Of a DNA stretch of 64,000 nt, positions 9,611 to 54,653 are shown piece after piece. A program made the translations under genes and the position numbers. The stretch's first letter is position 1, and each line of letters begins with the position of its first letter. The notes beneath the pieces were generated by a model. That model saw only the letters and a program-made list of their open reading frames with translations. It was not told where the DNA came from and searched no databases. This stretch comes from Adineta vaga (lineage: Eukaryota; Animalia; Rotifera). The stretch lies in the NCBI GenBank assembly GCA_021613535.1, contig CP075492.1:13702001-13766000 (forward strand), in the 5' to 3' direction.

Positions 9611-10430
9611 TGAAACGATACAAATAAAGTTATTTTTATACACATAATATTGGTCTATTTCTCACGATTTATTGAGATGATCAATCTTAATATTATTATC
9701 TATATTTCTATCTGATTGAGAAAGTTAGATAAAGGATAAAACAGATCGATCAACACACGTCGTATATGATAAGACTAAGGACATTTGCTTGTTGCTCACG
9801 ATGTCAAGAGAGAGAGAGAAAAATAAGAATATAAACCAAATCCAGAATTGTTTTTATGACAAGTATATCACAAATAAAGAAGATCTCTCTCTCTCTCGTT
9901 TTATCAAAACAATACTATTTATTCTCACTCATAAGTGATATTCATCATTTATAAAAAATGTGAAGAATTATAAAAGCTATAGTATAGTGATAATACGAAA
10001 CAGTTAATTTAAATAATCATTGATTTTATATCCCGTGCAGAAATGACAAGATTTTACTACACTCGAATTCATTGAAATTAATGCATCTCTGATGTTACTC
10101 ATATATTGACAATGATTAATACAATATACAAGTAGCAAATATAAAATTACTAATCGAATGTAATAAACAATATTACATTTCAACAAATCGAAACATCAAT
10201 TGAAATCATTTCATGTTTTACTTTTGTTTTATTCTGAAACTAAATAGTACGTTCTTTTTCATATATTTTATTTCGATATAAAAGACAACGAATGAGTATC
10301 TTGACGAAATAGATTACTCTTTTAAGTAGTCACATTTTGAAGAAGTGAGATCATAAAAGAAAGTTTTATATTGTATCAATACAAGTATCTTACCGTAACA
10401 AGAAACACAGCGAGTTAGACAACGAATAAA

Positions 10431-11972
10431 ATGAGTCAAAATTATCAACGAAGACAGGTATCTTCTGGACGAAGACAATCAACAAGTTTACCTGTTTTTC
10501 TTCGAGATTCTGATGAACTAAATCTTGAACGTCGATTAAGTACATGTATTAATTTTCAACGAAGATTATCAACTGTTTCTCAATTATATTTACCTAATGG
10601 AACTGACTATCATCCACAAGCACATGTTCCACCAACAGGTCCTGAAGCTCAACAACCATTTCTTGTTACATCTATTGAGAATGATACATCAGATGGACGT
10701 CGATTATCAATCATCTCTCATCGTTTTCAGCCTATCGATGAAGAAACTACTGATTCTATTAAAGAATCTCACATAGAAAAATTAGATAAACATCAACGAA
10801 AAGCTTTATTTATTTCCGAGCCACTTATCAGTAGTTTAATCATCTTTCCAATTCTCGTTCTCTTTTGGGAATGTGGTTGGAATCTTATATTGATATTTCT
10901 CAATCGTTTAAACGAATTCGATGCAAATTTACATCTAGACGAAATGACTCAAGAAGATTTTGAATCCTATACATATCAATCGTTATTATTTCCATATTTA
11001 ATCGCTGAATTTCTTCTTCTTTTGTATTATCTCGGTCAAGATATCATACATAATTTTTTGAAAAATCAACATTGGTTTATTCGAGCAGTTTTATTAAAAT
11101 TACATATTCTTCTATTAGCTTCGCTTTATATCGTTCAATGGGAAATGTTATGGACAATTTGGGATCAATTTACACCTCATGAATGGTATTTCGAAATAAC
11201 AATGTCTTTTGCATCATTATTTGCATTAATTGTTTTTATTGGACATTTATCCGATTTAGTTTGTTCACCATTTGTTTTCAGTTATGATTCAATTGATTAT
11301 TGTATCTTTTTCGGTTGTCCTCTTCTTACAAGAGAAGTAAGTTAAAATGATTTTTCTTGTTTTCTTTTTTGAAAACAAACATTGATTTCATATTAGATGT
11401 CAACATGGAAAATCAATCTAATTAATTATATTTTATATGAAATTATAATATCGAATTTATCAATTATAACATGGCGTGGTTTTTATCATTTTCTTGATGA
11501 ACATCTTTATCCGGATGATGTCAATTTATCTGCTGGAATTTGTTTGATTATTGGTTATGTTCTCTATTTTCCCTTGATGTATTTTCAAACATATTTAGAA
11601 GAATTAAATTTAAAATATGAATTCTGGACATTTGTTTCAATCAATTTTCCACAATTTTATCGTAATATTCGTCATCTATTAGCGTTTGTATCATGTGTAT
11701 TTACTTGGCGTGGCTTTTGGGTTTTATTTGATGCTTATGTTGATATATTTTATGATTATTATCTGACGTATTTATTTTTATATCTTCTAACTTTCATCAT
11801 TTTATCTCTTCTTCAAACAGCATCATCAACCAATGGACCATTGAGTAATATGGAAGATCCGAATAATTTCTTTCCATTATATCCTCATTGTTATGTTTCA
11901 ACAGTCCATCAAAAACTTTCCAAATTCTCATTATTTCAACCGAAATATGCAGAAGAAGATACACATTTGTGA
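10431..11972 (+). CDS. Fuseless-like multi-pass membrane protein, 2 exons
   Basis: Intron 11337-11396 (GTAAGT..TTAG) joins the two ORFs in frame. Repeated W-x-G-x-W type helices: FWECGWNL, TWRGFYHFLD, TWRGFWVLFD. Confidence 0.72.
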
Positions 11973-12470
11973 AAAGATGGAACTCAATGACTTTTCATCG
12001 CAGTCAGATAGAATACTTACGAAAACTTTCGTATAGTTTTATAAAGTTTTTAAATTCAAGAAGAAAAAAAGAACATTTTTTTTATTTTAATCAATAAACG
12101 AATTTAATTGAATACAATACATTGAAATGACCGATAATACTTCTTATGTTGAAGTGATACAAGCTAGTGTGCCTTATTTTAAAGTCTTTGGATAATGTAT
12201 TGTGGTTTAAAATTATTTTGATTTTTGTTGACTAAGGAAATGTTTTTTTTTCATAAGCCAAAAGTATGACGTTTTTCTCTCAACTGTACATCATTACCTC
12301 TGCAAGTTTACTTTCTTTATACAAACAAATGTGTAAATTACACGGATTGATTCTGCAATGATATGATTCCAAAGCCAGCAGAAATTCCATAATTCTACAT
12401 AAGGAATTGCATCTTGTACGTAACGACTAATCTTTTCACACATTACAAGACATAGCCCTGTAAATTGTAT

Positions 12471-13424
12471 TCATATTGGGTGAACAGTGTTCGTGACCAA
12501 TCGTCTATGATGCATATTCTTTCGAATCCATTTGGAAAATTCAGGCAGCAAACAAGCATACATCCAAGGAAAAAGAAAACATATCAGATATGGAAATTCA
12601 GATATGTAATCCATTTGAAATTTAATTAATAAATCGGTAGGACTCACATTTAGTATTAATGTATTGATAATCAAAGGTGTCCATGCAATGAGATAAAGAC
12701 TAGATACACAAACTAACTGCAACGTCAAACGTCTATGATTTTTCCAAGTCATTGGTCGATTAAAACGACGTTTTTGTCTAATAACACGCATTATAAGTGA
12801 GATATTTGCTAGGAAAATAACAATTATTGGTACACTGTTATTCACTATGTAATCGAATAATGTCAACAGTCTATCATACAAGAAATAACAATTAGAAAAA
12901 CCACATACAGGCAATGTAAAATCCCATTGTGTACCATCACAAGTAATGAAGAAAATACTAAAAATATAAAATATAAGTGGATATGTAATACATAATATTA
13001 AGGGAAGATAATAGAAGATATAACGTTTGATATGATGTTGGAATAGATGCAATCGAAATACGAATAAATGTCGTTGAATAGAAATAGTTGCCATTAAAAA
13101 CTCACTGATTACTGAGAAACTGAATAATGTAAATGTCCACCAAGTACAATATTCTACTGTTGCAGGATGAACAGAATGAAAATAATAGAAATGAATACTC
13201 ATTGGCATATTGGTTGATAATTGTAGAAAGTTGATAATAAACAAGATGAAAAGAGAATGATTTTGGAAATTGATTAATTCAGCACGATTTGTAATGAAAA
13301 ATGTAAAAATTAGAAAACTTAGAATCATTGCTGGTGCATAAAATGTGATTAGAAGAAGAAATTTTGTATGATATAAAAATTCAGATGTTTGATCGACGAC
13401 TATGTCTGTCTGATTGGCATTCAT
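12471..13424 (-). CDS. Rhodopsin-like 7TM GPCR
   Basis: Seven hydrophobic segments, SIQRH at the DRY position, AWTP in TM6, PWMY in TM7. Confidence 0.85.
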   Translation of the reverse strand: MNANQTDIVVDQTSEFLYHTKFLLLITFYAPAMILSFLIFTFFITNRAELINFQNHSLFILFIINFLQLSTNMPMSIHFYYFHSVHPATVEYCTWWTFTLFSFSVISEFLMATISIQRHLFVFRLHLFQHHIKRYIFYYLPLILCITYPLIFYIFSIFFITCDGTQWDFTLPVCGFSNCYFLYDRLLTLFDYIVNNSVPIIVIFLANISLIMRVIRQKRRFNRPMTWKNHRRLTLQLVCVSSLYLIAWTPLIINTLILNVSPTDLLIKFQMDYISEFPYLICFLFPWMYACLLPEFSKWIRKNMHHRRLVTNTVHPI

Positions 13425-13783
13425 TGTTACTGCGAGATCTAAATAGATTATTGTGAACTTTCTCTCTTTTTTTCTATATCTACTTAAAAATATGAAATGA
13501 TAATCTATATGTGAGAGATGTACTTTTGAAACTAAAATAATTATTGAATGAACGTGCCGATTGTTTCTCTCATTTGAGAAGAGAAAAGAGTTATTTATTT
13601 TAAAGTCATTATTAAATGCAATGTGGCAGAAAAAGTTTCAAAAAGGTGATTAGAAGATTTTTATAATTATAGATGTCCCAGTATTCCTATTTTTAAAATA
13701 AGTCAATATAGGCAACATAAGAGTAATTACGATGTTCTATTTTGATGCTATACATCACTTCATATCGAATGATGTTCTAAAAA
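12472..13783. repeat. Direct segmental duplication, copy A (GPCR + ~360 bp upstream)
   Basis: Near-identical to 20153-21067. Weaker similarity continues at ~14001-14125 vs ~21211-21341. Confidence 0.9.
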
Positions 13784-15090
13784 CTTATAAAACATGTGAA
13801 CGTTTAAACTCGTGTTTCATTTTTACTTGTACACAATGCATCAAAAACTTACACATCTTCTAGGCATTTCATTAACAAGTAATACTAATAAGTCAAATAA
13901 TCTATTCGGATATTCTTATGAATTATTTCGCTCAAAATATATTAACGTGCATGAAATATGTAGTATAAAAAAGTCTTCAAATTATTTTCTATATTACATA
14001 GATTGAATGATTCCTAGAATAATCTCATCATTGTCGATTTATTTTTAATCTTCAGAAATAATCTAGAAATAAATTTATGTCAAAAAATGAAAGTTTTTTT
14101 CTCTGTAATGATGTAAACTCGTCAGAGGCAACGAACTAGAAACAATTTGGAAAAAAAATGAATGACATGTTTCATTATACCTTTTTCTTTTAACATTGTA
14201 ATGTAGTGAATTATCCTCTCATTGCCGAAGATAAGAATGAATTAGTATCTCTTAAAGCAATGAACTAAATTAGTTGATCTATCCTATATCAGTTAGATTT
14301 CTGTTTTAATAAAATTATCTTCTAAAACTTGTTTGAAATGAAAGATGTACAACAAAAATCATAGATACACTCAAGTATTTGCTGAATAGATTGTATATTT
14401 CTAAAACGTATAATTATGTGAATATTACTTATTGATAACTATACACTTATTGCTTCTACTATCTCCGACGAATTTCTTATTTATTACCTTTCCAAGCAAT
14501 AATTTTCAAGGACCATTCGAATATGATGTTTTTCTTCTTCTGTAAATTTTGTTTCTCAAGCAAGAACTATATCTTTTGACTTATTTTAAAGTTACATTAA
14601 GATCTTTGATGGAAAAATGCTTTCAATAAAAATAGAGTTAAAAGCCTCTATATGAAAAGAAACGAAAGTATAGAATATTTTGAGCTGATATCATATTTAC
14701 TCATCTTAATATAAATATATTGCTCTTACTATATCGAATACAAACATAAAAAAATCAATGGAAAAGTTAGGATTAAAACAAATATTTTGCCTTCATATTT
14801 CAATTGGCTTGACACATTCTTAAGATTTTATCTACAAATTTCTTCAGTATGATTACAGTATTGTCATTTTAGTTCATTTATGATCAATTTAGAGAATGAC
14901 TTAATATCCTAGTACACACTTAGCATCCGCCATCTTTTTAAGACGCTTACTATCAGATATATATTCAAAATTTTTGTTTAACAAGATAAATGTAAAGTAG
15001 AATATTTATTGAAATATGAAACTTTCGTAGTATGATCTACGTATAGTTTCTATAAGTGTAAAATAATTGTTTAACGTCTTTTCGTTCAAT

Positions 15091-15420
15091 CTAGTAGCAA
15101 TCACATCGAAGCCAACCAGTTAATGCATTACAATAGCCACCTTTGAAGCCATTACTTTTACAATGTGAATTGCATTGGTATTCGTTTTTATCTAAAGGTC
15201 CATTACATCCAAATCCTCGAGGAGTTGCAATTTGATCAACATCTCGAAGATCGAAATCAGCATCATTCGAATCATCATCCACACGTTCTAATTCAAAACA
15301 ATTTCAAACAATAAAGATAGAAATATAATCCTTACCGATATAACGTGGATATGCTCGACTTTGCACGCATAACATCATACCAATCATAACCACAATTAGA
15401 AGAAATGATTTCGAAATCAT
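15091..15420 (-). CDS. CS-alpha-beta defensin precursor (plectasin/ancient invertebrate type), 2 exons, 93 aa
   Basis: Exon 1 (15420-15336) encodes signal peptide MISKSFLLIVVMIGMMLCVQS. A 48-nt GT-AG intron follows. Exon 2 (15287-15091) encodes an acidic propeptide ending in R and the mature GFGCNGPLDKNEYQCNSHCKSNGFKGGYCNALTGWLRCDCY (6 Cys, CxxxC, GxC, CxC). Confidence 0.93.
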
Positions 15421-18400
15421 GATATTAGTTGAAAAAAACTATTAGAATTGAGAATAGTTTGATCAATTAGTCCGATTTTTTTTCAATCGAAAGTAGAATG
15501 AAATGAATTCGAAGGCAACTAACCAACTTTTATATAGAAAATCAAAGTTTATTGAGTTCGATAAGTCATTATTTTAGTTGACTTTTGAGATATCTAAGAT
15601 TAGATTATTGAAATAAAAGAAAAGTATTATTTCAGTTTAAACAAAGATTAGAGATATGGTAGATTACATTTGAATTGAAATTCGATGTGACGCACTAACA
15701 TTTTTTAATAATAATAATTCGAACCGAAAGAACTTTATGTGAACATTTCTAAACCGTAATGTCCATAACAACATCTCCTACGATCAATCGTTTTTTTTCT
15801 TCTCATTGTACATGTGCTTTTATTGAGTTATCTACGCTTGACTTCCCACACGTGCGTTGTTCTATTGACTCATTCATGTATTTTTAAATTAATCGCAATA
15901 AATCAAATCGTTGTTTCTTCTTTGTATAGGTTCTCGATTTTCGATATTCTCTACAAGAAAACATATAAATTTTCATGAATAAAAGAAGATTTTTAATGAA
16001 ATATTCAATCGTGGAAAAACTAGCTAAACAGAAATGTATATTAAAATGTTTGGTCGATGAATGAATTGAAATTCTTTTGAAGAATCAATATATATCTTTC
16101 TATTTACTAATAAATGATTCAGATATTCTGAATTAAACGAAATGAACATCATTTGATCGACTGTAGAACAGATCTTTAGACAGCAATTGTATACATTCGA
16201 TCAATAGTACATTCTTCTACTATAGACTTATCAGACATTTGATTTATAATCTGAAGTACAATGATAAATACATAGAGAAAATGAATAAATACAAGAAATA
16301 TCCTTTTCAAATATTTACATCACGTTCTATATGAAGTTTTGAGTTATGAAACAGATATGAAAGACAGAAGATGGAAATAATAGCGAATAATATCATATTC
16401 TAATATTTTATTTATATCTTATTTACTATTTAAATTTCATACTATGATGAAAACATTCATTATAAATAAATAATATCAACAAATGTTCTGTTCAACTAAA
16501 TTTTTCAAAAATTCAAATAAGTCGATAAATTTAAAACATTGAATGTATCTACAAGCCATATGAATAAGTTCTATGAAGACAACATTCATACATATTGTTC
16601 CTATCGTTTTTTAACATTCCGATTTGAGTGTATCGATGAAAATCATATGAAAACGGGATTCGACATACCAAAATGGTATTCAAATAGTATTTTCACTATT
16701 TTCTACAATTTTTCTCTGATAAAATGATTATAAAACACAAGATCAATGAATTTGATATACTAAAATATTATTCATCTATTTCAATGAATTCTTCTCGACA
16801 ATTTTCAAATGATCAGATAACCAGCAAATCTATCGTAAACAAACAATTGCTAATAAAATGCTATTCCAATATTATTCCTTTTCGACATATAACTATCGCA
16901 AACCTTTTCGATGATTAACAAACACATTAGAAAAGACTTTATCAAAAGAAAATCTTGTTCAATTACTTTCCTCATATGAAATCTTAACTTTGACAATAAT
17001 ATGATCATCACAAAACACAACATAAACATATAAACTATACCAATAAAATATTCAAATATCTGTGGAAAATTTTATTTCAAAATCTTAGCTAACCAGATGA
17101 TCGAATAAGACAACGTATATCAATCATTGATAAGAGTATAACATTCAAATATTTGTCTTGTTTTTCTGCACTAAATTTATTGGTAATTATAAAATTAACA
17201 AATACCAAGCAATTGAATGAATTCTAAGAAATGATATTCAAATATTTCATTCATTTTTCACCTTATCTTTTGAAATGAATCAATGATTGAGAAACAAAAA
17301 AGAAACGGATCGATCATCCCAGGATTGTACTATTCAAATATTTTCATCTTTCAATTTCAATTCTACGTGAAAATAAGTGTCATTCAATACATTATAACAG
17401 AATAATTCATAACAATAAAATATTCATATATTCTTTTGTTCGATTATTTCAATAATGAAGTCAATCAACTTATCAAGAGATTTGTAGTAAATATATACTT
17501 CTTACAAAGAAATGTTTCGAATATTTGATTGTCATATTAAGTCAAAGATGAAAAGATTAATTCTTTTATCATAACAGACATAAGATACGAATGATTTCTA
17601 TGATAAAATATTTGTTACAATATTTTATTCACAATAAATAAAAGCTAGAATTGAATAAGAACGATTGATAATTATCCTATACACGAACGAATCTAACCAA
17701 ATAAATCTTCATAAATATTATTTACACTCAAGAAAAGGTTCTAATTTAACAAGATAATAAATATACAAAGTATGAATGTGAATAATTCAAAGGAATGTAC
17801 TATTTATATATTTGATCATATGCAAAAGAGCGATGTGAATTAGATCGAGTCTGATTGATAAAGACATTAGAAATGAATGAACAAGCAAAAACGTTAGTCA
17901 GATACAAGTGTACTTCATCCGACATATATCAAACTGCGATAACGAATCTAAACTTTGAAATAAAAGAATATTTCAAACAATCTCTTTATTCCAATCACTT
18001 ATTTATTGTATAAAACACTAATTGATTCAATCCGTTGAGTACTAAATGCAAAATATCTGAATGATTTAGAACAACATTCTATACACATATGTGAATATGA
18101 TCAATTATAGATGAAGAAGATGAGTATATAACTTACGATTCTATGATTATTGAATACTATCGATGATAATCGTTTTCAACTATGTTATTTACTCAAATAT
18201 AGATGAAAATAAACATTAAAACGAACGATTATGTATATTAAATGGATAGAACGAATCAGATTTTCTTTCTAATATCTTATTTATATTCAATAAAATCGAT
18301 GAAAATAATTGGGTGATTATCGAACATATGATTAATGAATAATCTCGAACAGAATTTCATACGAGTTTGTTATATGAGATAGAATAAAGATGAAAATGAA

Positions 18401-39299: not shown

Positions 39300-40181
39300 C
39301 TATGGACGATGGATAATTATTTGTTTGAGAAAACTACGTACAGGCTGATTCATATAGATTAAGAAGATAACATCATGAAGTATGGTCAATGATGGTAGTA
39401 TTTGAAAACAAGCATCGAGAAAACGGGGAATTGAATCGTTCTTATTAAACATTTGTATAACAAACGAAGGAGTCCATCCTATAAAAAATACTATAAAAGT
39501 CCCGATCATTGTTTTAAGTAAAAACACATCACGTGAATGTGACACTTGATATCCAGTACCTGTTGTATGTACACGACGAGTAGATTGATGGACAAATACA
39601 AAAATTCGAGCATTACATACAGTTACGATTGTAATTGGTATGAAAAGAGTCGTTATTAGAGTATAATATGGTAAAAACGTTGCTTGTGTAGTTATTGAAC
39701 AAGCGAAACCATCGACAAACAAATATGGTAAAGCAATAAGAAAAGCAACAAGCCATCCACATCCAATACAAATCCATATATAAATATTTGAACGAAAGAA
39801 ATGTTTATTTGCATGTACAATCGTAAATAACCTACTGATAGCAACTACACAATGTGAATACATTAACTGACATGCAGCCATATCTGATAAATATCCTTGT
39901 AATCGACACGATAAACGACTTGATATGTTCAATAGTTGTTGGATTTGTATTCCAAATATTAAAATACATAACCATGCACTTGTAAGACATACATTTATAG
40001 TAAACCAATTGAGTTTATTGCTTCGAAATATCGGTCGACTAAGTATTAGAATCGTATAACCAATAGCAAGAATAATAGAGAGCAAAAGAATCGGTAATTG
40101 AATGATAATAGTCGTTGAATCATCTGAAAAACCAACATTACTGATAGATTGATTACTATCAACAGTAATATTCTTACTCAT
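39300..40181 (-). CDS. Rhodopsin-like 7TM GPCR
   Basis: Seven TM segments, TM3 Cys (SCRLQ), AISRL, GWTP, MNQPVR. First ATG at 40181. Confidence 0.82.
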   Translation of the reverse strand: MSKNITVDSNQSISNVGFSDDSTTIIIQLPILLLSIILAIGYTILILSRPIFRSNKLNWFTINVCLTSAWLCILIFGIQIQQLLNISSRLSCRLQGYLSDMAACQLMYSHCVVAISRLFTIVHANKHFFRSNIYIWICIGCGWLVAFLIALPYLFVDGFACSITTQATFLPYYTLITTLFIPITIVTVCNARIFVFVHQSTRRVHTTGTGYQVSHSRDVFLLKTMIGTFIVFFIGWTPSFVIQMFNKNDSIPRFLDACFQILPSLTILHDVIFLIYMNQPVRSFLKQIIIHRP

Positions 40182-41052
40182 GACGATACTTGTGTATGAT
40201 GTCAAAAAAAAACAAATGCATGATTATCATCATCGCATAGAACAAATATAATGAAACTAATTCCATAACATCGCATCCGTTCATCTTCTTATAGAGAAAA
40301 AACGTTTCTATAGCAACACATTTCACGTTGTCTGGATAGAATTATAAATAAGTTTGTATTTTAAGGATGATATATTTATGACGATGACTACTACAATATT
40401 GTAGTTTTATGGAGTGTATGAATAATACGACTGATGAATATATTATATTTCTGCTTTTAGAAGAAAATCAACTTTTTTATTCTTCATCTTCAAGATCCTT
40501 GGTTAACAAAGCTCATTAGAAGTATATAGAATCTAATTTTAGCATCTATTTGTAAATAGACAATTTGAATTCAATCAAAAATTGAAGTTATACTAAATAA
40601 TTTGATGAAGTAGAATTAAAATGTTGACTCAGTACACATTTGACATATTAACAGAAGTATTTTTTTCCTTCTATCTGACAAATTTGCTTACTCTTTTTTT
40701 TCTGTTTGTCAAGGTAAATAACATTATCACATGGGCATATGTATTTTCTTCGTTTCTTCTGTCTGACATGTTGCCGCTGGTTTTACGTTCTCTATTTATA
40801 CAATATAGAGAAAGAAAAGTGATCGATTGCAAACACATATATTCAATGAAATGCATGCTTATTATTCCGTCAGTATAAAACGACGGTAATATATTTGTAT
40901 GTACAATTTTTGCTTCTCTTTACTCTGCACCATCATACTGATCATTACAATAAAATGACATAAAAATGTAAGTGTAAATTGCAAGTTTGTTTATGTATGT
41001 TGACTGTAGTTATTCGTTTTTTTCTTTCAAAAGTGAATATATAATAACACTT

Positions 41053-44000
41053 ATGGAGAATAGTGAACTAAATGAATTGACCATATTAGTCGATGACATC
41101 AACAGACCAGTCGAAGGTGATGAACATGATCACTTCGATTCTCATCCATTACAAATAAATCATTCAAACAGTAAAGATCAAGGTGATTATGTTTAATAAC
41201 AGTGCAAATTGACTTAACTGATTGTTTACTTTTGATTTATTTAGAACGATCTGTATATCCTACTATGGCATCAGAAGTAGAAGAACGAGTTAAACATGTA
41301 TGTTTATATATATAAATAAAAATTGAGAGTAAAGAACGAGTTTTTAAATTACAGGTGATCGATACATTGAAACTTAATCTAGCAGATTCAACTAGGTGAG
41401 TTGCTTTCGTAAAGTTCGTATAATACAAGTGAATCCTCTCAATATGTTTATTTAGTGACATTCCAGCGTATTTTGGCTTTTTGAAATTTGTTTATGCAAA
41501 CGATGCTGATAAAAACGATCGTTTATCTTCGGTAAATAATATTCTATGTTAAGTTCTTAAAACGAGTCTCCTATTTCTTTAGTTCATACATCTTGCTACA
41601 GAATCACGGCCGTGGATGGTAGCAAATCTTATTGAAGCATATCATCTTCCTACTCCCGATTTTATTCTATCAATTCAAACTGGAAGCATTCAACAGTACG
41701 GACCATATAAAGATAGATCTGGTATTCAAATTGAAACTGAACATGCTATTCAACGTGGTCTAACTGCTCTAGCAACAATTACACGTGAGTAATTGAGAGA
41801 TGTTTTGAACGAATCGATATTATTATTTAGATCCATGGGTGACAACGAGTTGTAATAAACAAGACATGATTAAATTAGTTGGCAATGCATTACATCGAGA
41901 TATGTGTGGGGCTGATGTTCCTTGTATTAGTTTTTGTAATTGGAAATCTGTTGCAGGTAGACTTTATACATTCAATCAGTATATATGTATGATTGAAACA
42001 ATATCGTTTATTTAGATCATTCTCAATTAGAAAAAGGAAAAACTCTAATTTCACATCTTTTTGATACGCGATTTGTGGTAAAGAAATAAGATTAATCTAT
42101 AAATTTGATTTGGATTGTTTTTTGTTAGATGAACGATAGAAGTAGTGGACCACGTTTTATTCATGAATATCAATTAACAAAAAATAATGATAATGAAACG
42201 AGCATTTCTGGTTGGCATCTTGATCCAAATCATACTCATTTTCTTCTTTTTGATGATGGATCAAATGATGTTAAAAATATGCTATTAAAACGTCAAGAAA
42301 TCGAACATGAATTCAGTATTAGTAAAGCATTAAAATCACCTGTCAATGGTTACCAACCAATGAGTACGAGTACGTACTAAACATCATTTTTATAAATATG
42401 TATATGTACATATTATTCTTTTTGCTAGTATTTGATAATGATATTCCCATTGTTATGATATTATTGGGTGGTAATTTTACAACATTGATTGCTATATGTC
42501 AAGGTTTAGAAAATGGAACACCCGTTGTCGTTGTTCGAGTAAACATTTGATCGTTTGGTTGTTTTCAATGAAATGAAAGATGATTTGTACTGTAGGATAC
42601 TGGTGGTTTAGCTGATATTATAGCTCAATTATGTCGCAAGTTATCACCAATGGATGAACTTGCAGAATTTCGAAAGATAACATATATTGAAGAATGTAAA
42701 ATAGAATTGAAACGATTATGTTATGAAGAAGGTATACTATCGGAACGTGATGATGAAATTAAAATTAATGATCAAATATCTGAAATTGAAAAATATGTCG
42801 ACGTATTGAAAGAAATGGAAAAACTTATTGTAATATTTGATGCAATTGAACGTAAAAATAATTTAGAAAACGCTGTTGCTGATGCAATGTTAAACGGAAT
42901 AAAGTATCGAGTAGAAAATTATGAACAATTCTTCAGTTCAGAAACCAGAGCAGCAGAATTAGAATGGTGTTTAGTAAGTAATTCAAAGATTTCTTTCCAT
43001 ATGATATGTAAGATATATTATTTCTTTAGATATGGAATAAAATTGATCATGCTCTTCAATTATTAATCGATCGTAATGATAAGACAATAATGTCAATGAA
43101 TGACATGAATTTAAATAAAGATCAAGTAAACGAAACAAGATTTCGATAGTAGAGGTAAATGTTACTGAATGTTTTTTCTTTTAAATAGAAAATAACCTTG
43201 ACCCAACAATTATTATACGAAGCTTTGTATCGAAATAACGTTCTTTTCGTCAATCTATTGGTAGAATGTGGTGCATCAATAGAAGAATTAACAGAAGAAC
43301 AACTCATTGTTATTTGTATCAAAACTATGGTAACTAAATTATTCACAATTCAAGACAACTATAATGTTTTTTCTTTTCTTCAGAACGATGGTGCCCTTCC
43401 ATTAGAACATGTATCTAACAAATACTATCCATATACACATGATATAACAATAAATCAATTGAAAAAATATGTCGAACAAATTTACAATAGTTATCTTCGA
43501 GAATATTTAGGTCATTATGTAAGCATTCTCTGTAGATTTTTGAAACAGATCATATCGTTTCGTTCTTCTGTAATTTAGATTTCACAAGATATAAGTCGAA
43601 AAAGAATACAAGCAAGAAATGAACGTTTTAGTGGATTTAATATTGGAAAAATTATGAGTTCGAATACTAATCGAATATCCAAAATATTCGAAGGACGAAA
43701 AATCGAAGCACTCTACCTTTGGTTTGTATTCATGAATCTACCAGATATGGCCAAATATCTTTGTTCTCGATGTCGAGTAAGATATATACTCTCTATTTAC
43801 TATTACTATTTTCATATTATTAGAATCAAACAGTGGGAACTCTCCTTGCCAGTGACATTTACTTTGCAGCAACCAGAAGAAATACACAAAACAAACGGAA
43901 TCTTCAAATAATGGCACAGTAGGTTGATAAAATCATCTGCTCTTTTATGTATGAATTTATGAAAATAGAGAATTCGATCGACATTCAAGAGGCATCATTG

Positions 44001-46228
44001 ACAAATGTTATGCAAAAGATGATGATTTTGCATTGAAATTATTAAAATCTAAAGCAACAATGTTCTACACCTGTTTTCCATTACATATAGCACGACGAGC
44101 AGATTGTCGAGCATTTCTTGCTAGTAATACAGTACAAAAACATCTTCATAATAAATGGTTTCATAATTTTGATTATCAACGACGATTGATGAAATTACCT
44201 ATGGGAATTTGGGTTTGTTGCAAACTATTGGATCAGACGTCTTTTTAAAACGTCTTTCTGACTTTAGATCTGTCTATCATCATTATTATTACCTATGTTA
44301 CCTATTGCGTCAATAGTTTTACCTTCTCTCTATAAAAAAACCTCGATCAAAGAGAATTCATCATCAGTAAGATAAATATAATGCATTTATTCATAAGTTT
44401 TTTTTCAATGATTGAAACAATTGCATGATTGTTCAGGAACGTAACCTATTGAATCGATATCGACCAACAATAACGTATCAGTCTATATTGGAAAAAACGG
44501 ATCATCAAAGTTCAAAAGCACCTAATATGCGTGAACGAATCAAATGGTTTTATGAAGCACCAGTAGTACACTTTTACTATTACTTTGTTAGTATATACCA
44601 TTCATATAATTTCTAATCTTTATCTTATTCGATATCTAGATATTCTTTGTCTCCTTTCTGGGTTTATTCAGTTATGTTCTTCTGTTCGATTATTTTCCTT
44701 TAAATATCTATGGTGAAAAACGATCTGGTATTCAAAATTTACCTATACCTATCACTGAAATTTTATTACACATCTGTATTGCTAGTTTAATTATTGATGA
44801 AATTTATCAAGTTAGTCTTTTTTCTCAGTAGCAATAATAATTTCATTTTATTTACATGTAGTATACCTTACAAACAATCAAAGAATATCATTACAGTACA
44901 AATCCATGGAATTGGATGGATCTAACTGGAATTCTTTTTTATATAATTGCATTCATTCTTCGTTGGTTTGTCAAAGAACCAGTTTTCATCTGTTCAAAGT
45001 AAGATGTTTTCAGAAGAAACAATGAATTTTCTATATTCCGTAATTTTTATTTTTGTCTAGAATATTTATGTCTATTGATTTAATTATCTGGTATATTCGA
45101 ATACTTTATCTTTTTGCTGCATACGAAATCTTAGGACCAAAATTAACTATGATTTATGAAATGGTTAGTCTATTCTATCTCACAAACAATATCGACTCAA
45201 ATAAATACATGTGTTTTCTAGATGAAAGATGCTCTCCTAATCTTTTTATGTTTTATTCTTATTCTTCTATTCGGATTTTCGATTGCTTCATGGTCTCTTC
45301 TAACAACAACACAACAAGTCATTTGGACAAATGTAACTAATAGTACATCAACGAACAAGTTTACCATAGTAGAAGGAAATGGTGAATCGAGCAGTTGGCA
45401 ACTATTAAGAGATGTACTCAATTGGGGTATTTGGAAAGTGTTTGGACAGGTAGCTGAACCTTACAATGGTGCTGTTAGTGGTATGAATACATTTTTATTA
45501 TTGATATTAAGAATGAATGAATGCATTTTGTCTCCGTGTTTAAGAAAATGATGCTTATGGTACGTTTGTATTCATATTTGCTGTTGGTTTTACCGTAATA
45601 TCGAATGTTCTTCTTCTCAATGTTCTCATTGCAATGTTTAAGTAAGTAAAAGAAACGAATCTCATCATAGATAACTGTTTTCTGTATGGAATAGTGAGAA
45701 AATTTTACGTGTTCAAGAAAAATCAAACGAATTATGGAGATATCAACGATTCTGGTTGATCAATGAATACAAAGATAAAACTGTACTACCTCCTCCGTTG
45801 AATATTCTATGTTATCTAATTCAATTTCTGAATTATGTTATCTGTTGTAAATGTCGATCTAGATCATCTGCTTTGCTCGATCCAGATTCTGGTATCATTA
45901 TATTGTACATACGATATTTTTAGATTGATCTCGTTTCTTTATTTATAGATATTTCATCGGATGAAACTTCTATTGATATTAATATAAATGGAGAATCTTT
46001 GATTGATACTCGTCAAATGAATCGTGAAAAGTCTTCGCTGAAACGTATTGGCGACAGATATTTGAGGAAGAAAAACAAGAAAAATCGTAAATTATTTTGA
46101 CAAAGTTTAGAAAGAAAAATTTCAATATCACTTTTGTTTCATTTCATAGACTAAATAAACAACAAGATGAAACGAATGAAGTAATTCAAAATTATGATTC
46201 TCAAAAACCACTCAATGCAACACTTCAA
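41053..46228 (+). CDS. TRPM-like cation channel (N-terminal part of a probable TRPM-LRR fusion), >20 short exons
   Basis: MHR/SLOG motifs LDPNHTHFLLFDDG and IPIVMILLGG..GTPVVVVRDTGGLADII. Also LLYEALYRNNVLFVNLLVECG, WFYEAPVVHF, S4-S5 LGPKLTMIYEMMKD, pore VFGQ, S6 SNVLLLNVLIAMFN and TRP region LWRYQRFWLINEY..VLPPPLNI. As assembled, splicing gives a stop at 46152-46154. Confidence 0.9.
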
Positions 46229-46292
46229 GTATAGAAATACTAAATGCTATATTAGATGAATATTTGCTCTATTATTATTATTATTTTCATAG

Positions 46293-49200
46293 ACATTAGA
46301 ACAACTCGATTTTAGCAACAAACAAATCGGATACAAAGGCGCTGAACAACTTGCAGATGCTGTAAGAAACAGCACAGTAAGTTATACTATCATTTATTCA
46401 TATTTTCAATTTTAACTTCTTTTCTATGTTACATAGACACTGACTGAACTGGATTTATCCAAAAATCACATTGGTGACCAAGGAGTTCAATATCTTGCAG
46501 ATGCTTTATTACACAACAAAGTAAAATTCATTCCGATCGTCTTTTTTTTCAAATTCATTTTCTTTTCGTATAGACAATTATTACACTTGATCTTGCTGAT
46601 AATAATATTGGAGCACATGGAGCTCATTATCTCGCTAATGCTTTTCGAAACAATAAAGTAAATAGTATTCTTTCCTATATATGCACTCTCTCAAGTATCT
46701 ATTCAGACATTGATCAATATTAATCTTTCAAATAATCAACTTGGCGATGAAGGAATTGAATATCTAGCTGATGCTTTTCGATATAATACAGTAATCATGG
46801 ATTTTTGTTCAATACATATACTCATAAACGTGTGTATAGACGCTCAATACATTGAAACTTCCAGCGAATCGAATAACTGATTATGGTGCTGAATGTTTAG
46901 CGAAAACGCTCAGAAATAATATAGTATGTCTCTTTTCTTGTCGTCGATATTTTCATCAACATGTTTTTTTGTTCTGTGAAAAAGACAATTAACATGTTAG
47001 ATCTTCGATGGAATAATATTTCGACTAAAGGAACACAACAATTGGCTGAAGCCTTACCACATAATACAGTAGAATATTTCTCTCTATCAACATAAACATC
47101 TTCTTATATATGATATAGACACTTACTAACTTAGATCTTTCATGGAATGCAATTGACGATCAAGGTGCTCAATCTTTAGCTGATGCGTTACAAAATAATA
47201 CAGTATACCCCTTTTAAGATTTATTATTTTCGATTCGTATAACTTCGATCTTTTCTACAGATATTGGAAACACTCAATCTTGCATCCAATAGAATTGGTG
47301 GCCATGGCGCTCAACAGCTAGTAGCTGCTCGACAAAATCATGATGTTTGTTTCTTCTCTTACATACTCATTATTTTATCTCTATTCTATTTTGTAGATTC
47401 TGACGACATTCAATCTATCAAGCAATCATATAGGACATGATGGAATGAAACTGTTAGCTGATGCTTTGAAGACTAATAAAGTAATAATATCACACCACAA
47501 TTGTTCTTACGATTATTTTATTTCATAGTCAATTGTTACACTTGATCTCGCTAGTAATCGCATTGGAGATGATGGAGTACAACATTTGATTTTTGCACTA
47601 AAAAATAATACAGTATATATCTTTCGTTGCGCACTCCTGTTTTTATTTTTCTTTGCACTTCATCGTTCGCACTTATAGACATTGGCAACACTAAATCTAT
47701 CCAGTAATCAAATTCGTACATCTGGCATCGCATATCTTGCTCAAACTATAGAAGACACCACTGTAAATTTCAAGGGTTTTTATCCTAATTCCATGACAAT
47801 AACGCGTTTTTCGTCTAGGCACTCACAGTAATCGATCTTAGTTACAACGAAATTGGAATAACTGGTGCTAAAGATCTAGCGACTATTATCCTAACTAATG
47901 CAGTAAATACATTTAATATCAATCGAATCATTCTTATCTGTATTTATCAATATAGACGATTACCACTCTTCTTGTTTCGAATAATCAAATTGGATCTAGC
48001 GGAATCCAATATATCTCATATGCTTTACAAAATAACACAGTAAACTTTGCTTCTTATTGTTTACTTCTCTCGCACTTTAATCAATGTTCTTCTTTTGTAT
48101 AGACAATCATCAGTATAGATCTATCAAAAAATCAAATTGGAGATGAAGGTATGAAACATTTGGCGAACGCATTAAAACATAACACGGTATACAATCCTAT
48201 ATTCAAAGAGATCATTCATTCATTCATTCATTCATTCATTCATTCATATGTCTGTTTTTCATCGGCAGACAATTACTACGATTGATCTATCGCAGAATCA
48301 AATTACTGATAAAGGTATTGAACATTTAGGAAATGTTTTGAAATTCAATACGGTAAATTTTATGAATTATTCATTTCCTATCTCTAGTTAAGATTAAATA
48401 TTATCATAGACATTGACTAATATCTCTCTTGTCAGCAATAAAATAACTGATAAAGGTGCTGACTCTTTGGCAAGTTCTATTCAACAACATAAAGTAATAT
48501 TCCGTTCCCAAAAGTTATTTACGTATCTTTTTCATATCTATATTTCTCAATACAGATCATGATTAAAGAACTCAATCTAGCACATAATCTAATCGGTGAT
48601 CAGGGAGCTCGATCACTTGCTAACTATCTACAATATCAAACTGTAAATTCATTCGTCATATATTTTCTTTCTTTTATCTTCCTATATGATTATTTAGACA
48701 TTAACGAAATTGGAACTTATAGGTAATCCAATTACGAGCAATGCTTCACGCTACTTGTCCGACGCTTTTCGACATAATACGGTAAATAAATCACAATTCA
48801 TATATTTCCAAGATATACATATATAATATTCTATATATAGACACTCGTAAGTCTTAATCTTTCATTGAGTCAAATTGATGAAGAGGAGAGACAAACTGTT
48901 ACAAATGCATATCGCAGTAATTCGGTATTTATATATCTAGTACATTGTTATTCATTTCATATATATTCTATCCTTTTGCACAGACATTCACTAGTCTTGA
49001 TCTTGAACATAGTGGTATTGGACGTACGGGTGCGCAGATTCTTACAGTACTACTGCGACTAAATACAGTGAGCTTCTGATATGACTCTTTATAGACACAA
49101 CCTATTTTCTCTTATATGTAGACATTATCGAATCTCAATCTTCGACATAATAAAATAACTGGCAAAGCAATTCAACATCTTTCCGAAGCTTTACGAACTG

Positions 49201-52200
49201 GCACAGTAACTGAATATTTCAGTCATTACTTTTCCTTTCATGTCGATTTTGATAACCTAGACATTGACTACACTCGAGCTGGCAGATAATGAAATGGGTG
49301 TAGAAGGAATGCAACGTCTAGCTGATGCTATTAAACACAACCAGGTATAATGATAGGTGTCTTCTAATATAGATTGGATTCAAAATTTTTTACCTCCACA
49401 GACACTCACTACACTTGATCTTGCAGCGAATGGAATCGGTACCGAAGGAGCTCGGTATTTAGCTGATGCCATTCGAAATAACAAAGTAAAGATGTTTTTG
49501 TGAAACTATTTTCTCAATTTTATTGATTTTTGCGATTGTAGACCATCACTTCGCTGGATCTCAAATCGAACAAGATTGGTAGCGGAGGTGTACGATATTT
49601 AGCTGATGTTTTTCGAAATAATAAGGTAAATATCATGCTTTTCTCATTGTTAGTGATCATTGTATTTAGACACTCGTAACACTTGATCTCGGATCAAATG
49701 CAATCGGTACCGAAGGAATACAATATCTGGTTGATGTTTTTCAAGATAATAAAGTAGGAAGGCTTTTTTTGCTCTTGTTTCCATTAGTATAATCTCCAAG
49801 CGATTTTCTCCTTATGGATAGACATTGAGTGCACTCGATTTGGGAACAAATGGAATTGGCGTTGATGGAGCACAACATTTAGCGAATGCTTTCCGAAACA
49901 ATGTGGTGAAGATCTTTAATTATTTCATTAATCATTAACATTTCGAATTTCTTCACTTTTACATATAGACACTAACTACACTCGATCTTCGATGTAATGA
50001 AATTGGTGTAGAAGGTGTACGACATCTGAGTGATATGTTTCGAGATAATAAGGTAAATTTCTAAAAATGTTTTTTGTATACATTGTCGATATCTTTATAC
50101 TCTTTCTTTTCAATATAGACACTTACTATATTGGATCTTCGATCAAACGGAATTGGAGATAAAGGAGCACAATATTTGGCGGAAGCCTTTCGAAATAACA
50201 ATGTAATTATATTTTCTTTCATTAAGAAAACTTTGTATTTTTGACATAGACACTAACGACACTTCATCTCGGATCTAACGGTATTCGAGCCAAAGGAATA
50301 CGCTATTTGCTACTTGATGCTTTCCAATCTAATCAAGTAAACAGTCATTTTGTTTACTAAAATCAACACTAATTTTATTCGTAGACACTCACTTATTTAG
50401 ATCTATCAGATAATAAGATTAGTCTTGAAGGAGTAAAATATCTTGCTGATGGTCTTCGCACTAATAAAGTAAATTTAATTTTATATTTTACTTCGCTTCA
50501 ATGAACAACTCCATTTTCTTTGCTATAGACATTAACAAATATCAATCTTGCGAATAACAAAGTGGGCGTTGAAGGAATACAGTACATAGCCGATGCTCTA
50601 CGTAGTAATGTGGTGAGTATATATATTTCTATTATTTCTACTATTTCCATCAAAAACTTATTGGTATAGACACTCACAATGCTGGATCTATCGGGTAATA
50701 AAATGGGTGTTGAAGGGGCACAACATTTAGCTAATGCTATTCGTAATAATGAGGTAGTTATTTTTGAAAATTCTTCAATTCTATTTATACAAAATATTGT
50801 AATTCTGAAGACACTCATTATTCTCAATCTTGCGGATAATAGAATTGGTGACCAAGGAGTACAATATCTTGGCGATGCTCTTCAAAATAATACTGTAATC
50901 ATTTTTGTTTCTATTCTTATTCTCAATTGTTTAGATCTATATTCTTTCTCGTTCATAGACACTTACGACACTTGATCTATCAGATAATGAAATTGGTACT
51001 GAGGGAGCACGATATTTAGCTGATGCTTTCGAAGACAATAAAGTAAATCTTACGTATTTTTTATTCTTATCTTCCATTCAATTCATATAAAGGTTCTTAC
51101 AAAAGTCTACCTACAAAGAAGTGATATGAACAACAAAGAAACACAACGTGTATCCGATGCATTAAGAGCACATGTAGTAAGTACTATTTCTTTTCTTTGC
51201 AACTTTAAGTACAATTTTTTATTCTTAGATACAAACACTTCCGGCCCAAAATGTTCCAGTCACAGAAGTTTTAACTGATGTATCCAAAACAATAGCTGAT
51301 GTACTAAGAAATAAAAAAGTATTTTCGATTTCTTTCGTCTAATTATCGTCGATCTTCAATTTTTCAAATAGAATATGACTAAACTTTGCCTTCGAGATTT
51401 GAAAATGGGTCCTGAAGAATGTCGACATCTTGCTGCTGCTTTTCGAGATAATCAAGTTTGTTTCTCTTTTTCCTCTATTCTCAAGAAATCTTCGTTTTTT
51501 ATGTAGACACTCACTACATTGGATCTCACGTTTAATGCCATCGGTCCCGAAGGAGCACAACACATTGCTAATGCTTTTCAAGATAACAAGGTCTGTATTA
51601 TATAACCATGATGTTTTCCCATGCTATCTATACATGTATGATTTTGTTCGATAGACGCTCACAACATTATTGCTCGGATCGAATAGAATTGCTGATGAAG
51701 GAGCACGTCATTTGGCTAAAAGCTTTCGAACGAATACAGTAAATGATTGTCTTTTGTTCTCTTTATCGTACGCATCTCAACTTGTTGGGTAATAGACACT
51801 CACTACATTGGATCTGACATTGAATGGAATTGGTAGTGAAGGAGCACGTTATTTAGCTGATGCTTTTCGTCATAATGCAGTAAATATTTTTCTATTATAA
51901 TCAACAATGCATTATTTTCTTTATAGACACTCACTACACTCGATCTTCGATCGAATTCAATCGGAACTGAAGGAGCACGATGTTTTGCCGATGCATTTCG
52001 AAATAACATGGTAATTCGCGTACATTTTTTTCAGGAGAGCGCCTATTACCATCTGATCGTTTATTTTCTATGTAGACACTAACATCACTTGATTTTAGTT
52101 CGAATAAAATTAGCAATGAAGGAGCACAATATTTAGTTGACATTTTTCGCGATCAAACGGTACGAACCTTTCTCTTATCAATTTTTTTTCATTGATATTT

Positions 52201-53276
52201 CTATCTAAAAAAACAGATCCTTCATACACTACATCTTGGTTCGAACGAAATCGATGCAGAAGGAATGGAATCGATATCTAATGCATTTCGAGAAAATAAA
52301 GTACATATTGTTGTACCTAGCTTATTGTTATCATATGTCCACTTCTGTTACCCAGACACTCGTTGTTCTTGATCTTCAATCAGATGAGATTGGTGATAAT
52401 GGTGTTCAATATTTAGCTGATGCTATTCGAAACCATCAAGTACTTATTATCATTCATTTTTTTTTCTTATGCATATATTGATGTGGAAATTCTTCTGTTT
52501 AGACAATAACTACTATAGATCTGTCAGATAATAGTATCGGTGCTGAAGGAATACAACACTTAGCCAACGTTCTTCGTGATAATACCGTAATGATCAGTTC
52601 TAAGTTCTTTTTCTGTTACCATTGATAAACAATTTTCTTACAGATGCTTACAAAACTTGACCTCTCGTTCAATCTTATTGGTGCTGAAGGAGCACGATAT
52701 TTGAGTGAAACTATACGAGAGAATACGGTAAATATTTTTTTTTAATTTTCTCATATTATTAGAGATTTCGTTTTATGTATATCGAATGTATAGACAATTA
52801 CTTCATTGAATCTTCATTCGAATGAAATTGGTACTGAAGGCGCACAATATTTGGCTGATGCCTTTCGAAATAATAAAGTGAGTTGTTTTTCTTTTTCTAT
52901 TATCTATTTAGTCCTTTGATGAAAACGTTTATTTTCCAACTTTAGACATTGACAACAATCAATCTTCGTTCGAACGGAATTGGAGATAAAGGAGCGCAAT
53001 ATTTAACAAATGCATTGCAAAGTAACAAGATATTGACCAATCTTGATCTATCTGACAATGGTATTGGAGACAGAGGAGTGCATCTGTTGACTACTGCTCT
53101 ACGTGATAATAAAGTAATCATCGAATTTTATTTTACTTGAGTATATTCTGATTTCTATTTGTCGAATGTAGAATCTCACTATTTTCCATCTTGAAGGCAA
53201 TGAGATCGGCAAAATATCGAAACATCGTGTCATGCAAACTTTCAAGGAACATAGTGGATTGAGATTATTTTTTTAG
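46293..53276 (+). CDS. Array of ~50 RI/NLR-type 28-aa leucine-rich repeats, one repeat per exon
   Basis: I counted 49 AG/GT-flanked phase-0 exons, mostly 84 nt, with consensus TLTTLDLxxNxIGxEGAxxLAxAxRxNx (e.g. 46293-46376 TLEQLDFSNKQIGYKGAEQLADAVRNST). No stops seen in them. The terminal exon 53172-53276 ends in TAG. Confidence 0.93.
48213..48247. repeat. (CATT)n microsatellite in an LRR-array intron
   Basis: About 9 perfect CATT units. Confidence 0.9.
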
Positions 53277-53648: not shown

Positions 53649-54653
53649 TTAGTGATTGATTGTAGGAAGTTTTAAAGATAACATATTTGCATTGGTTTGT
53701 GAATGTGGGTGTGTTGGAGCTGTTTTAGTTAAGAGATTCGGTCCAACTCTTCCATTGATTTCATGGCATCCAAATAGTTTATTACATTCTCGTCGAAATT
53801 CTTTGAATGTAATGTAATAAAGTGGACAGGATAAAATATGATAAGTATACAGAGTTGAATCTAAGGTTTTCGCTAATGTTGTTGTTGGAACCGTAAAAAA
53901 AAATGCAGCAACAATAGTTGCTGGAATGGTCATAAGTAAAAAGAGAAATGTTGTAATTACCAAAGTAATTGATATTGCTCGATGTTGACTATGATGATTT
54001 TTAATGATAAGTGCTCGTCGACGACTAGTCAAATGATAGATGACGAAACTATTGAAGATAACCATGAAAATAAATGGTGCGCAATTGTACACACCTAAAT
54101 TAATATAATCCCAAAGCGGATAGATTTTGTATAATGCAGCATTAGGACTAATAGTTCCATTAGGTCGGTAATAGCAAGCAAAAATGAAAAAATGAAAATT
54201 GAATAGCGTAATAATGATAATGGTGCTGACAATTAAAATAAGAACACCTTTTTGACGACTATACCAAGGACGATGAAGACGGCTTGCTGCTATATATCGA
54301 TCAAGACACATTAATACCCGAAGCCAAGCTGATGATTGTCCAGCAAAGTAATTCAAAAAGCCAAAAATCTTGCATGTTACCATTGAATATGTTAAAAGTA
54401 TAAAACCATGTTCAATTGAAAGATAATGATCAAGATTCCAACCATATAACATCAGAATATCAAATACGGCTATTGTACGCATATAATAAATAATAGGTTG
54501 TTTCTTTGTATCTCGAAAAGCTGGCCGACAAAGAATATACAAAGTAAAAAGATTGAGGATAGTACCAACAATAACCAATGTTAATGGATAATAAGCAGCA
54601 ACCAATGGTTCACTTGATGTAACGCTTGCTGTTGTTGGTGTGCTATTCGACAT
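53649..54653 (-). CDS. Rhodopsin-like peptide-receptor-type GPCR
   Basis: GTILN in TM1, TM2 Asp, CKIFGF, CLDRY, TM5 Pro, CPLYY..FKEFR. Confidence 0.88.
   Translation of the reverse strand: MSNSTPTTASVTSSEPLVAAYYPLTLVIVGTILNLFTLYILCRPAFRDTKKQPIIYYMRTIAVFDILMLYGWNLDHYLSIEHGFILLTYSMVTCKIFGFLNYFAGQSSAWLRVLMCLDRYIAASRLHRPWYSRQKGVLILIVSTIIIITLFNFHFFIFACYYRPNGTISPNAALYKIYPLWDYINLGVYNCAPFIFMVIFNSFVIYHLTSRRRALIIKNHHSQHRAISITLVITTFLFLLMTIPATIVAAFFFTVPTTTLAKTLDSTLYTYHILSCPLYYITFKEFRRECNKLFGCHEINGRVGPNLLTKTAPTHPHSQTNANMLSLKLPTINH

Follow-up and report, generated by a model that had tools for sequence, protein, structure and literature searches.

A rotifer TRPM-family channel subunit that very probably ends in some fifty ribonuclease inhibitor-type leucine-rich repeats

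Introduction

Where does a TRPM channel end? The question is raised by a stretch of 64,000 nucleotides from the bdelloid rotifer Adineta vaga (GenBank assembly GCA_021613535.1, contig CP075492.1, positions 13,702,001 to 13,766,000 of the forward strand), which we call the window and in which positions are counted from the first letter. At 41053-53276, on the + strand, exons for a TRPM channel are followed by a long series of exons for leucine-rich repeats (LRRs) of the ribonuclease inhibitor (RI) type. Is this one gene or two? And what is to be made of the assembled sequence, which interrupts the reading frame at the very place where the two halves meet? The answer to which the evidence points, and which we hold to be very probable, is that of one expressed bdelloid gene, encoding a TRPM-family channel subunit the usual C-terminal tail of which is replaced by RI-type LRRs. 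The tail starts about 85 residues past the TRP helix and comprises approximately 1,410 residues in 50 repeats. The design is transcribed, and it is conserved across bdelloid genera.

The junction between channel and repeats

The elements that matter at the junction are the following.

45695..45891, + strand: TRP-helix exon (WRYQRF box, LPPP motif), which aligns to the TRP domain of TRPM7, with RNA joints on both sides
45949..46086, + strand: post-TRP exon, its A-run at 46027-46030 being one base short in the window
46087..46149, + strand: intron of 63 nt (GTAAAT..AG), containing the TGA at 46098-46100 that ends the open reading frame in the window's shifted frame
46150..46228, + strand: linker exon of 79 nt, entering in phase 2 and leaving in phase 0, with an RNA joint at its 5' end and homologues in relatives

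As assembled, the window has four A at 46027-46030, and the post-TRP exon runs on to the TGA at 46098. Its donor at 46086 (GTAAAT) is then in phase 1, where the linker exon requires phase 2; splicing 46086>46150 is out of frame and ends in a stop after 1,223 codons. The read evidence that bears on this point consists of assembled contigs from four public runs, placed on positions 44600-47600. The contigs of X1, X7 and X8, which come from three studies, are spliced and therefore derived from RNA, while X5 is unspliced DNA. An extra A behind 46026 is present in all four runs (X1, X7 and X8 as RNA, X5 as DNA at a depth of 107), and the run of four A in none of them. Once this A is supplied, a single open frame stretches from 41053 as far as the stop codon at 53274-53276. 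Splicing 46086>46150 removes the TGA at 46098; one contig from each RNA run (X1, X7, X8) shows this joint, and the DNA of X5 lacks it. The GT..AG joints seen in RNA are 45890>45948, 46086>46150, 46376>46437, 46520>46574 and onward. A preliminary description of this DNA, made from its letters alone, had proposed looking for transcripts across 45800-46400, and a single X8 contig (record 14, 1,601 nt) makes this bridge, from the TRP exon at 45710 through to LRR exons past 47480. One of its pieces ends at 46086 and another starts at 46985, and exactly 499 nt lie between the two, that is, 79 + 5 x 84. This is the linker together with five LRR exons, which implies the joint 46228>46293.

What, then, of the missing base? 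The X1 contig has zero substitutions against the window in the exons at 44640-46086, yet it has the extra A; the sole X5 contig of this region shows 12 differences from the window in 1,547 bases. The run of four A in the window is most likely a homopolymer error of assembly or polishing. It is because of this shortfall that the public annotation stops at 1,227 aa: the GenBank model I4U23_015247 (its product, 1,227 aa, is called P0024 here) takes a donor at 46031 and ends at a TAG at 46232, just past the linker, so that the LRR half is lost. Donor 46031 was not seen in any RNA contig. Two ways of staying in frame without the extra A were considered, through the weak donor 46031 or through a weak acceptor at 46166, and were rejected, neither being used in the RNA contigs.

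In the frame with five A, retention of the intron 46087-46149 stops translation immediately after ...EKQEKS. An isoform deprived of its LRRs by intron retention is conceivable; no evidence for it was seen. The RNA contigs of X1 and X7 also contain jumps that do not follow the GT-AG rule, 46505>46761 and 47600>46470 (the latter reported as 'goes back 1131'), which are most likely not splicing but de Bruijn misjoins, similar repeats having been linked to one another. Joints that skip whole exons are not found among those listed for the RNA contigs.

Layout of the gene

Open segments with TRPM signatures lie on the + strand between 41053 (ATG) and 46086. With the extra A in place, the splice model makes a single gene of 75 exons at 41053-53276 on the + strand (24 TRPM exons, one post-TRP exon, one linker and 49 LRR exons), with about 2,659 codons and a predicted mass of about 300 kDa. 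All 74 introns are GT-AG and very short (44-82 nt, median 57) in a window which is AT-rich (about 30% GC). The model was obtained by dynamic programming trained on the introns seen in RNA, with a few LRR exons adjusted by hand to the 84-nt rule; it recovers 16 of the 16 RNA-supported introns in the stretch where it was checked. The 49 LRR exons (46293-53276) are in phase 0 throughout and encode 50 repeats of 28 aa, with the consensus TLTTLDLxxNxIGxEGAxxLAxAxxxNx. They are 84 nt long, the exceptions measuring 87, 87, 90 and 168 nt, with 105 nt for the last exon. Degenerate repeats are found at 48841-48924 and 51093-51455. The other features of the gene are listed here.

41053..53276, + strand: whole gene according to the splice model, colinear with the A. 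steineri protein P0023 over residues 1-2375 at 61% identity
41053..41170, + strand: first coding exon with the start ATG, a start shared with the GenBank model I4U23_015247 (P0024)
41583..42538, + strand: SLOG / MHR1-2 exons, from Pfam LSDAT_euk on residues 100-365 of P0024 and also from a single-exon match
43189..44212, + strand: TRPM2-like exons (MHR3/4 to pre-S1), from Pfam PF25508 on residues 511-746 of P0024
44640..45641, + strand: S1-S6 transmembrane module with the pore, from Pfam Ion_trans and alignments to nvTRPM2 (6co7) and TRPM7, with RNA-confirmed introns
44793-44810, + strand: E/Q of S2
44907-44921, + strand: N/D of S3
45438-45452, + strand: FGQ filter
46293..53113, + strand: 48 LRR exons with 49 RI-type repeats (Pfam LRR_6), nine introns at 46376-47529 being RNA-confirmed
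53172..53276, + strand: last exon, with the final repeat or C-terminal cap and the stop at 53274-53276, its C-terminus conserved with A. steineri P0023 and the paralog

On either side stand single-exon genes for G-protein-coupled receptors of the rhodopsin family, at 39303-40205 and 53652-54653, both on the - strand (Pfam 7tm_1, 50.2 and 34.8 bits). With these opposite-strand flanks there is no room for a separate promoter region on the strand of the LRR exons, and neither the linker nor the first eight LRR exons contain an in-frame ATG.

The preliminary description had placed a TRPM-like channel, a linker exon at 46150-46228 and 49 LRR exons in a single gene at 41053-53276, and the open segments and the splice model bear out this exon layout. 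What it had missed is the A shortfall of 1 bp at 46027-46030, by which the frame of the gene is broken in the assembly. It had also argued that a separate LRR gene would lack both a start codon and promoter space: no in-frame ATG precedes the LRR exons, and the gene is continuous between its opposite-strand neighbours.

Two further observations concern splicing within the array. Retention of the intron 50754-50810, which separates two LRR exons, would add 19 residues and keep the frame, its 57 nt containing no in-frame stop; and with all LRR introns in phase 0, skipping an exon would keep the frame. Neither retention of 50754-50810 nor LRR exon skipping was seen among the joints listed for the RNA contigs placed on 44600-47600.

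The channel half

Database searches were made with single exons or with database proteins, P0024 standing in for the channel half. Single exons gave weak Pfam matches only; P0024, the annotated product of the window gene, gave scores above the curated cut-offs for LSDAT_euk (SLOG / MHR1-2; 70.4 bits, cut-off 25.7), for PF25508 (TRPM2-like, from MHR3/4 to pre-S1; 75.3 bits, cut-off 27) and for Ion_trans (41 bits, cut-off 25). The closest solved relative is the TRPM2-like channel of Nematostella (nvTRPM2, 6co7, 1e-48), followed by TRPM5, TRPM2 and TRPM8. Residues E893, Q896, N918 and D921 of nvTRPM2 are aligned with E, Q, N and D here, in S2 and S3; we take these four residues to be the transmembrane Ca2+ site of the kind known from TRPM2, TRPM4, TRPM5 and TRPM8. 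The pore helix and the filter VFGQV align with nvTRPM2 and with the FGE filter of TRPM7, and S6 is intact. In the TRP domain, WRYQRF corresponds to WKYQRY of TRPM7, and KTVLPPPLNIL to its KPVLPPPLIIL. Similarity to solved TRPMs ends near residue 1165.

The repeat tail

The best matches of the tail are ribonuclease inhibitor (1.8e-41), RI-like proteins of the axoneme (LRRC34, DRC5), NOD2 and the NLRPs, and LRR_6 scores 544.8 bits in the A. steineri ortholog P0023. Residues 1105-1790 of this ortholog, and not the window's own product, were modelled with AlphaFold2 from the single sequence. In the model, every 28 residues form a strand and a helix; the mean confidence score (pLDDT) is 70.9, with values of 70-90 in the repeats. 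In a Foldseek search with this model the top places go to ribonuclease inhibitors, the target TM-score reaching 0.85 (chicken RI). The preliminary description had assigned the repeats to the RI type and had suggested a structure prediction as a check. Match, domain, model and fold search all agree with that assignment, the ortholog's LRRs being predicted to fold as RI does. No match to NACHT or NB-ARC was found by Pfam in P0024, P0023 or P0021, and it is for this reason that we do not count these proteins as NLRs.

How the tail has evolved can be read from the comparison with A. steineri. Identity to the ortholog is 67% in the LRRs, 73% in the TRPM part and 84% in the transmembrane module. The LRRs are colinear repeat by repeat, their number and order being conserved. 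Positions that vary between the repeats of one protein are still 58-68% conserved between species, and exposed positions of the concave face are conserved at 65% versus 54% for the variable positions of the helix side (Fisher p = 0.017). No two LRR exons share more than 80% of their nucleotides, and the introns between them bear no relation to one another. To judge from these figures, the repeats look old and free of recent duplication or conversion. Colinear and conserved repeats, with the concave face conserved most, fit a conserved partner better than they fit diversification driven by pathogens, and the pattern suggests such a partner, or else a structural role. The gene appears to be under purifying selection and hence to have a function.

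Repeats of this class occur elsewhere in the genome too. Another RI-type array with one repeat per exon, at C5:5309496-5310718 (-), has a period of about 142 nt and is about 70% identical to the window repeats, and a first look over the genome yields more than 1,200 candidate LRR matches. There are also about 20 matches to the NACHT domain (C6:416764, C5:13356117 and C5:13265490, for example), many of them in very long, unbroken open frames (1,262-2,283 aa). On this showing the A. vaga genome contains NLR-like genes, separate from those studied here.

Relatives and the age of the fusion

The in-frame junction between channel and repeats is found again in five other sequences: a paralog in A. 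vaga, two proteins of A. steineri, a locus of Rotaria socialis and a metagenome contig. A search of the animal's own genome (100.8 Mb, six contigs) located the paralog at C3 3.35 Mb (C3:3339000-3352600, -), where the TRP exon is 76% identical. It repeats the layout of the window gene, with TRPM exons, a linker exon homologous to the one described above and some 45-47 LRR exons, and it is in frame without correction, with five A at the homologous run. Its GenBank model UJR07341.1 (I4U23_011628, 1,549 aa) omits the linker and most of the LRR exons, and the paralog is therefore under-annotated as well. This protein was among the 16 matches returned when 1.84 billion representative proteins were searched with one TRPM exon.

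The preliminary description had asked for homologues with both parts in one protein. P0023 (2,402 aa) and P0021 (2,574 aa) of A. steineri carry SLOG, TRPM2-like, Ion_trans and LRR_6 domains in one prediction, and the window-gene model can be aligned colinearly with P0023 from residue 1 to residue 2375, the junction included, at 61% identity. The R. socialis locus (L016) and the JGI metagenome contig (L018) present the same order in frame: the TRP box, a helix REK(V/A)(I/F)A..YW, the linker and LRR exons. Five A and the frame encoding REKV/I-A-E-x-YW are common to the paralog, the Rotaria locus and the metagenome copy. In the latter, the TRP exon and the post-TRP exon make one unbroken open frame, which fixes the reading frame directly. 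Together, cis-spliced RNA and a conserved in-frame junction support what had been claimed at the outset, a single polypeptide that joins a TRPM channel to about 1400 aa of RI-type LRRs.

In a tree of the TRPM parts (a quick maximum-likelihood search only, rooted at the midpoint), all the TRPM-LRR genes come out together as a single clade (SH-aLRT support 100%). The clade divides into two groups, that of the window gene and that of the paralog, and the Rotaria gene falls in the paralog's group. By this grouping, both the fusion and its duplication seem to predate the split between Adineta and Rotaria. The family consists of only two old paralogs, each with 1:1 orthologs, without lineage expansions. 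No LRRs were found downstream of ten other A. vaga TRPM paralogs that were fetched, nor of the TRPM gene of contig L017, and the fusion is thus confined to one clade. A profile search for further proteins with TRPM and LRR parts found only three Adineta entries, the next best matches being giant proteins with NACHT and LRRs; this search brought up no homologue from monogononts or from animals other than rotifers.

Two of these loci deserve a remark. At the R. socialis locus (CAJNYD010002712.1), three gaps of 1.2-2.5 kb, at 10103-12582, 13155-15486 and 16684-17892, separate homologous exons. They may be large introns or insertions, and one of them includes an N and a stretch of poly-C. Only a fragment of 600 aa is annotated for this gene. 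Contig L017 (CAXANX010000019.1, assembly GCA_963970355.1, 42 kb) is labelled Sphagnum troendelagicum and carries a TRPM gene with short introns whose identity to the rotifer gene is 37-82%. The moss assembly is probably contaminated here with rotifer DNA.

A possible mechanism

That the filter, S6, the TRP box and the Ca2+ site are all intact speaks for a functional cation channel that depends on Ca2+, which we infer to be tetrameric and non-selective. The tetramer would reach about 1.2 MDa, with four LRR solenoids hanging beneath the pore, since the C-terminus of TRPMs is cytosolic. The repeats being too many for one horseshoe, each solenoid would probably wind into a superhelix or fold into several arcs. 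The LRRs might then serve as a platform for binding proteins, on which a conserved endogenous partner would gate, tether or localize the channel. We lean, if only by a little more than an even chance, towards this regulatory or anchoring platform as the role of the tail, which would do for this channel what NUDT9-H, the alpha-kinase and the LRRs of LRRC8 do for theirs. It is also possible, if unlikely, that the protein is a single-chain receptor-channel, the solenoid binding a specific ligand inside the cell, be it microbial, danger-derived or one of the cell's own signalling proteins, and gating the TRPM pore directly. Were this so, animals would own a counterpart of the coupling between LRRs and Ca2+ channels in the plant NLR resistosome, without the NTPase switch.

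Alternative readings

Several points weigh against a single working gene of this kind. The window sequence itself is frameshifted at the A-run. The transcript evidence is made of contigs and not of raw reads, and a contig that spans two genes is not proof of a single transcript; no single contig spans the whole coding sequence of 8 kb, the RNA joints being seen within 44600-47600. P0023 and P0021 of A. steineri are automatic predictions. As for the channel, tetramer assembly is assumed from family membership, and no coiled coil of the pole helix was recognized in the alignments to solved TRPMs or in the AlphaFold2 model of the ortholog, where one helix of 28 residues stands ahead of the LRRs with a pLDDT below 50.

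Could we be dealing with two neighbours, a TRPM gene ending at TGA 46098 or at TAG 46232 and, beside it, an LRR gene in its own right, which might be co-transcribed and trans-spliced? The assembled frame does stop at 46098, the GenBank model I4U23_015247 does end after the linker exon with 1,227 aa, and bdelloids use spliced-leader trans-splicing. Yet the RNA contigs splice 46086>46150 in cis and continue into the LRR exons, which, like the linker, offer no in-frame ATG over the first eight of them; GenBank's donor 46031 is used in no RNA contig; and five other sequences keep the junction in frame. We consider the two-gene arrangement highly improbable. An easier objection to entertain is that the assembled haplotype truly lacks the base, so that this copy would yield a truncated channel without LRRs or be a pseudogene of recent origin, with the other allele and the paralog still intact. 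The assembly reads four A at 46027-46030, and the X5 contig, 12 of 1,547 bases away from the window, may well be the other allele. The same cannot be said of X1, which matches the window's exons at 44640-46086 without substitution and still has the extra A, as do all the runs; moreover, an error between four and five A in a homopolymer is a common artefact of assembly, and every exon downstream stays open. A real deletion is improbable in our eyes, and we return to one expressed gene that encodes channel and repeats together.

The same kind of weighing applies to what the tail is for. It is tempting to see in the solenoid, along the lines of the preliminary description, a cytosolic pattern-recognition or danger sensor which opens the pore on a microbial or stress ligand, making of the protein a single-chain immune receptor-channel. 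The LRRs are of the RI/NLR class, with matches to NOD2 and NLRPs, the profile search leads from the Adineta proteins straight to NACHT and LRR giants, and in plants the NLR resistosomes couple LRR sensing to Ca2+ channels. Set against this, there is no NACHT or NB-ARC domain; the family has not expanded in any lineage and amounts to two ancient paralogs, each with its 1:1 orthologs; the repeats, which are old and show neither duplication nor conversion of recent date, keep their order from one species to the other at 67% identity, the concave face being the more conserved. All this makes an immune sensor rather unlikely. A mechanical role, in which the LRR superhelix would be a tether or a gating spring to the cytoskeleton or to cilia, in the manner of the 29 ankyrin repeats of NOMPC, has its own appeal: 50 uninterrupted RI-type repeats exceed one horseshoe and, from the geometry of RI, would form a spring-like superhelix, their number and order are conserved, and the axonemal RI-like proteins LRRC34 and DRC5 are among the best matches of sequence and fold. 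Such axonemal matches, however, are generic for the RI class, and conservation of the concave face suggests specific binding and not elasticity alone, so that we regard the spring as a doubtful proposition. The platform for a conserved endogenous partner is the role that we retain.

Comparison with known systems

The preliminary description knew of no TRPM with LRRs, and our own search of the full-text literature that can be searched found no description of such a protein. A 2021 preprint on the diversity of TRP channels, which includes A. vaga, leaves LRRs unmentioned. In GenBank and UniProt these proteins stand as unnamed predictions, the window gene being truncated there. With reference to surveys of domain architecture, the lesson is a practical one: a discrepancy of 1 bp in a homopolymer truncates an annotation, and surveys based on proteomes will miss the gene. 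The protein could also show how binding to LRRs becomes an ionic signal without an NTPase.

The channel that it most resembles is its own kin. TRPM2, TRPM6/7 and nvTRPM2 (6co7) share with it the SLOG/MHR region, the TRPM2-like domain, the six-transmembrane pore with its FGQ filter, the Ca2+ site in S2/S3 and the TRP box. TRPM channels are also known to acquire new ways of sensing through fusions, with a NUDT9-H tail in TRPM2 and an alpha-kinase tail in TRPM6/7, and here too a large cytosolic module is fused at the C-terminus; unlike theirs, it is not a domain derived from an enzyme but a solenoid of 50 RI-type LRRs. As a channel subunit with C-terminal cytosolic LRRs in the same polypeptide, the protein recalls LRRC8A-E, the volume-regulated anion channel, the LRR domain of which modulates gating. 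LRRC8, by contrast, makes a pannexin-like hexameric anion pore from four-transmembrane subunits with about 16 LRRs, where we have a TRPM Ion_trans cation pore with 50 repeats of the RI class, and the two pores have no sequence relationship. The repeats themselves are those of ribonuclease inhibitor and of the LRRs of NOD2 and the NLRPs, 28 residues with one strand and one helix each, and NLR and RI genes typically give each repeat an exon of its own, as is the case here. There are, however, about three times as many of them as in RI, and unlike in NLRs there is no NACHT/NB-ARC and no CARD, PYD or TIR: the array is joined to an ion channel.

NOMPC/TRPN, too, is a TRP channel that carries a solenoid of tandem repeats in the cytosol, and a very long one, but these are 29 ankyrin repeats at the N-terminus, against 50 LRRs at the C-terminus here, in a different TRP subfamily. 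Polycystin-1 (PKD1), a TRP-related membrane protein, has LRRs as well, a small number of extracellular repeats of the typical class at the N-terminus, in contrast to the cytosolic RI-type array. The fusion described here extends the known theme of TRPM C-terminal fusions with a third and very different module. An LRR solenoid of the RI/NLR class would widen that theme to a scaffold for protein recognition, wired directly to a cation pore.

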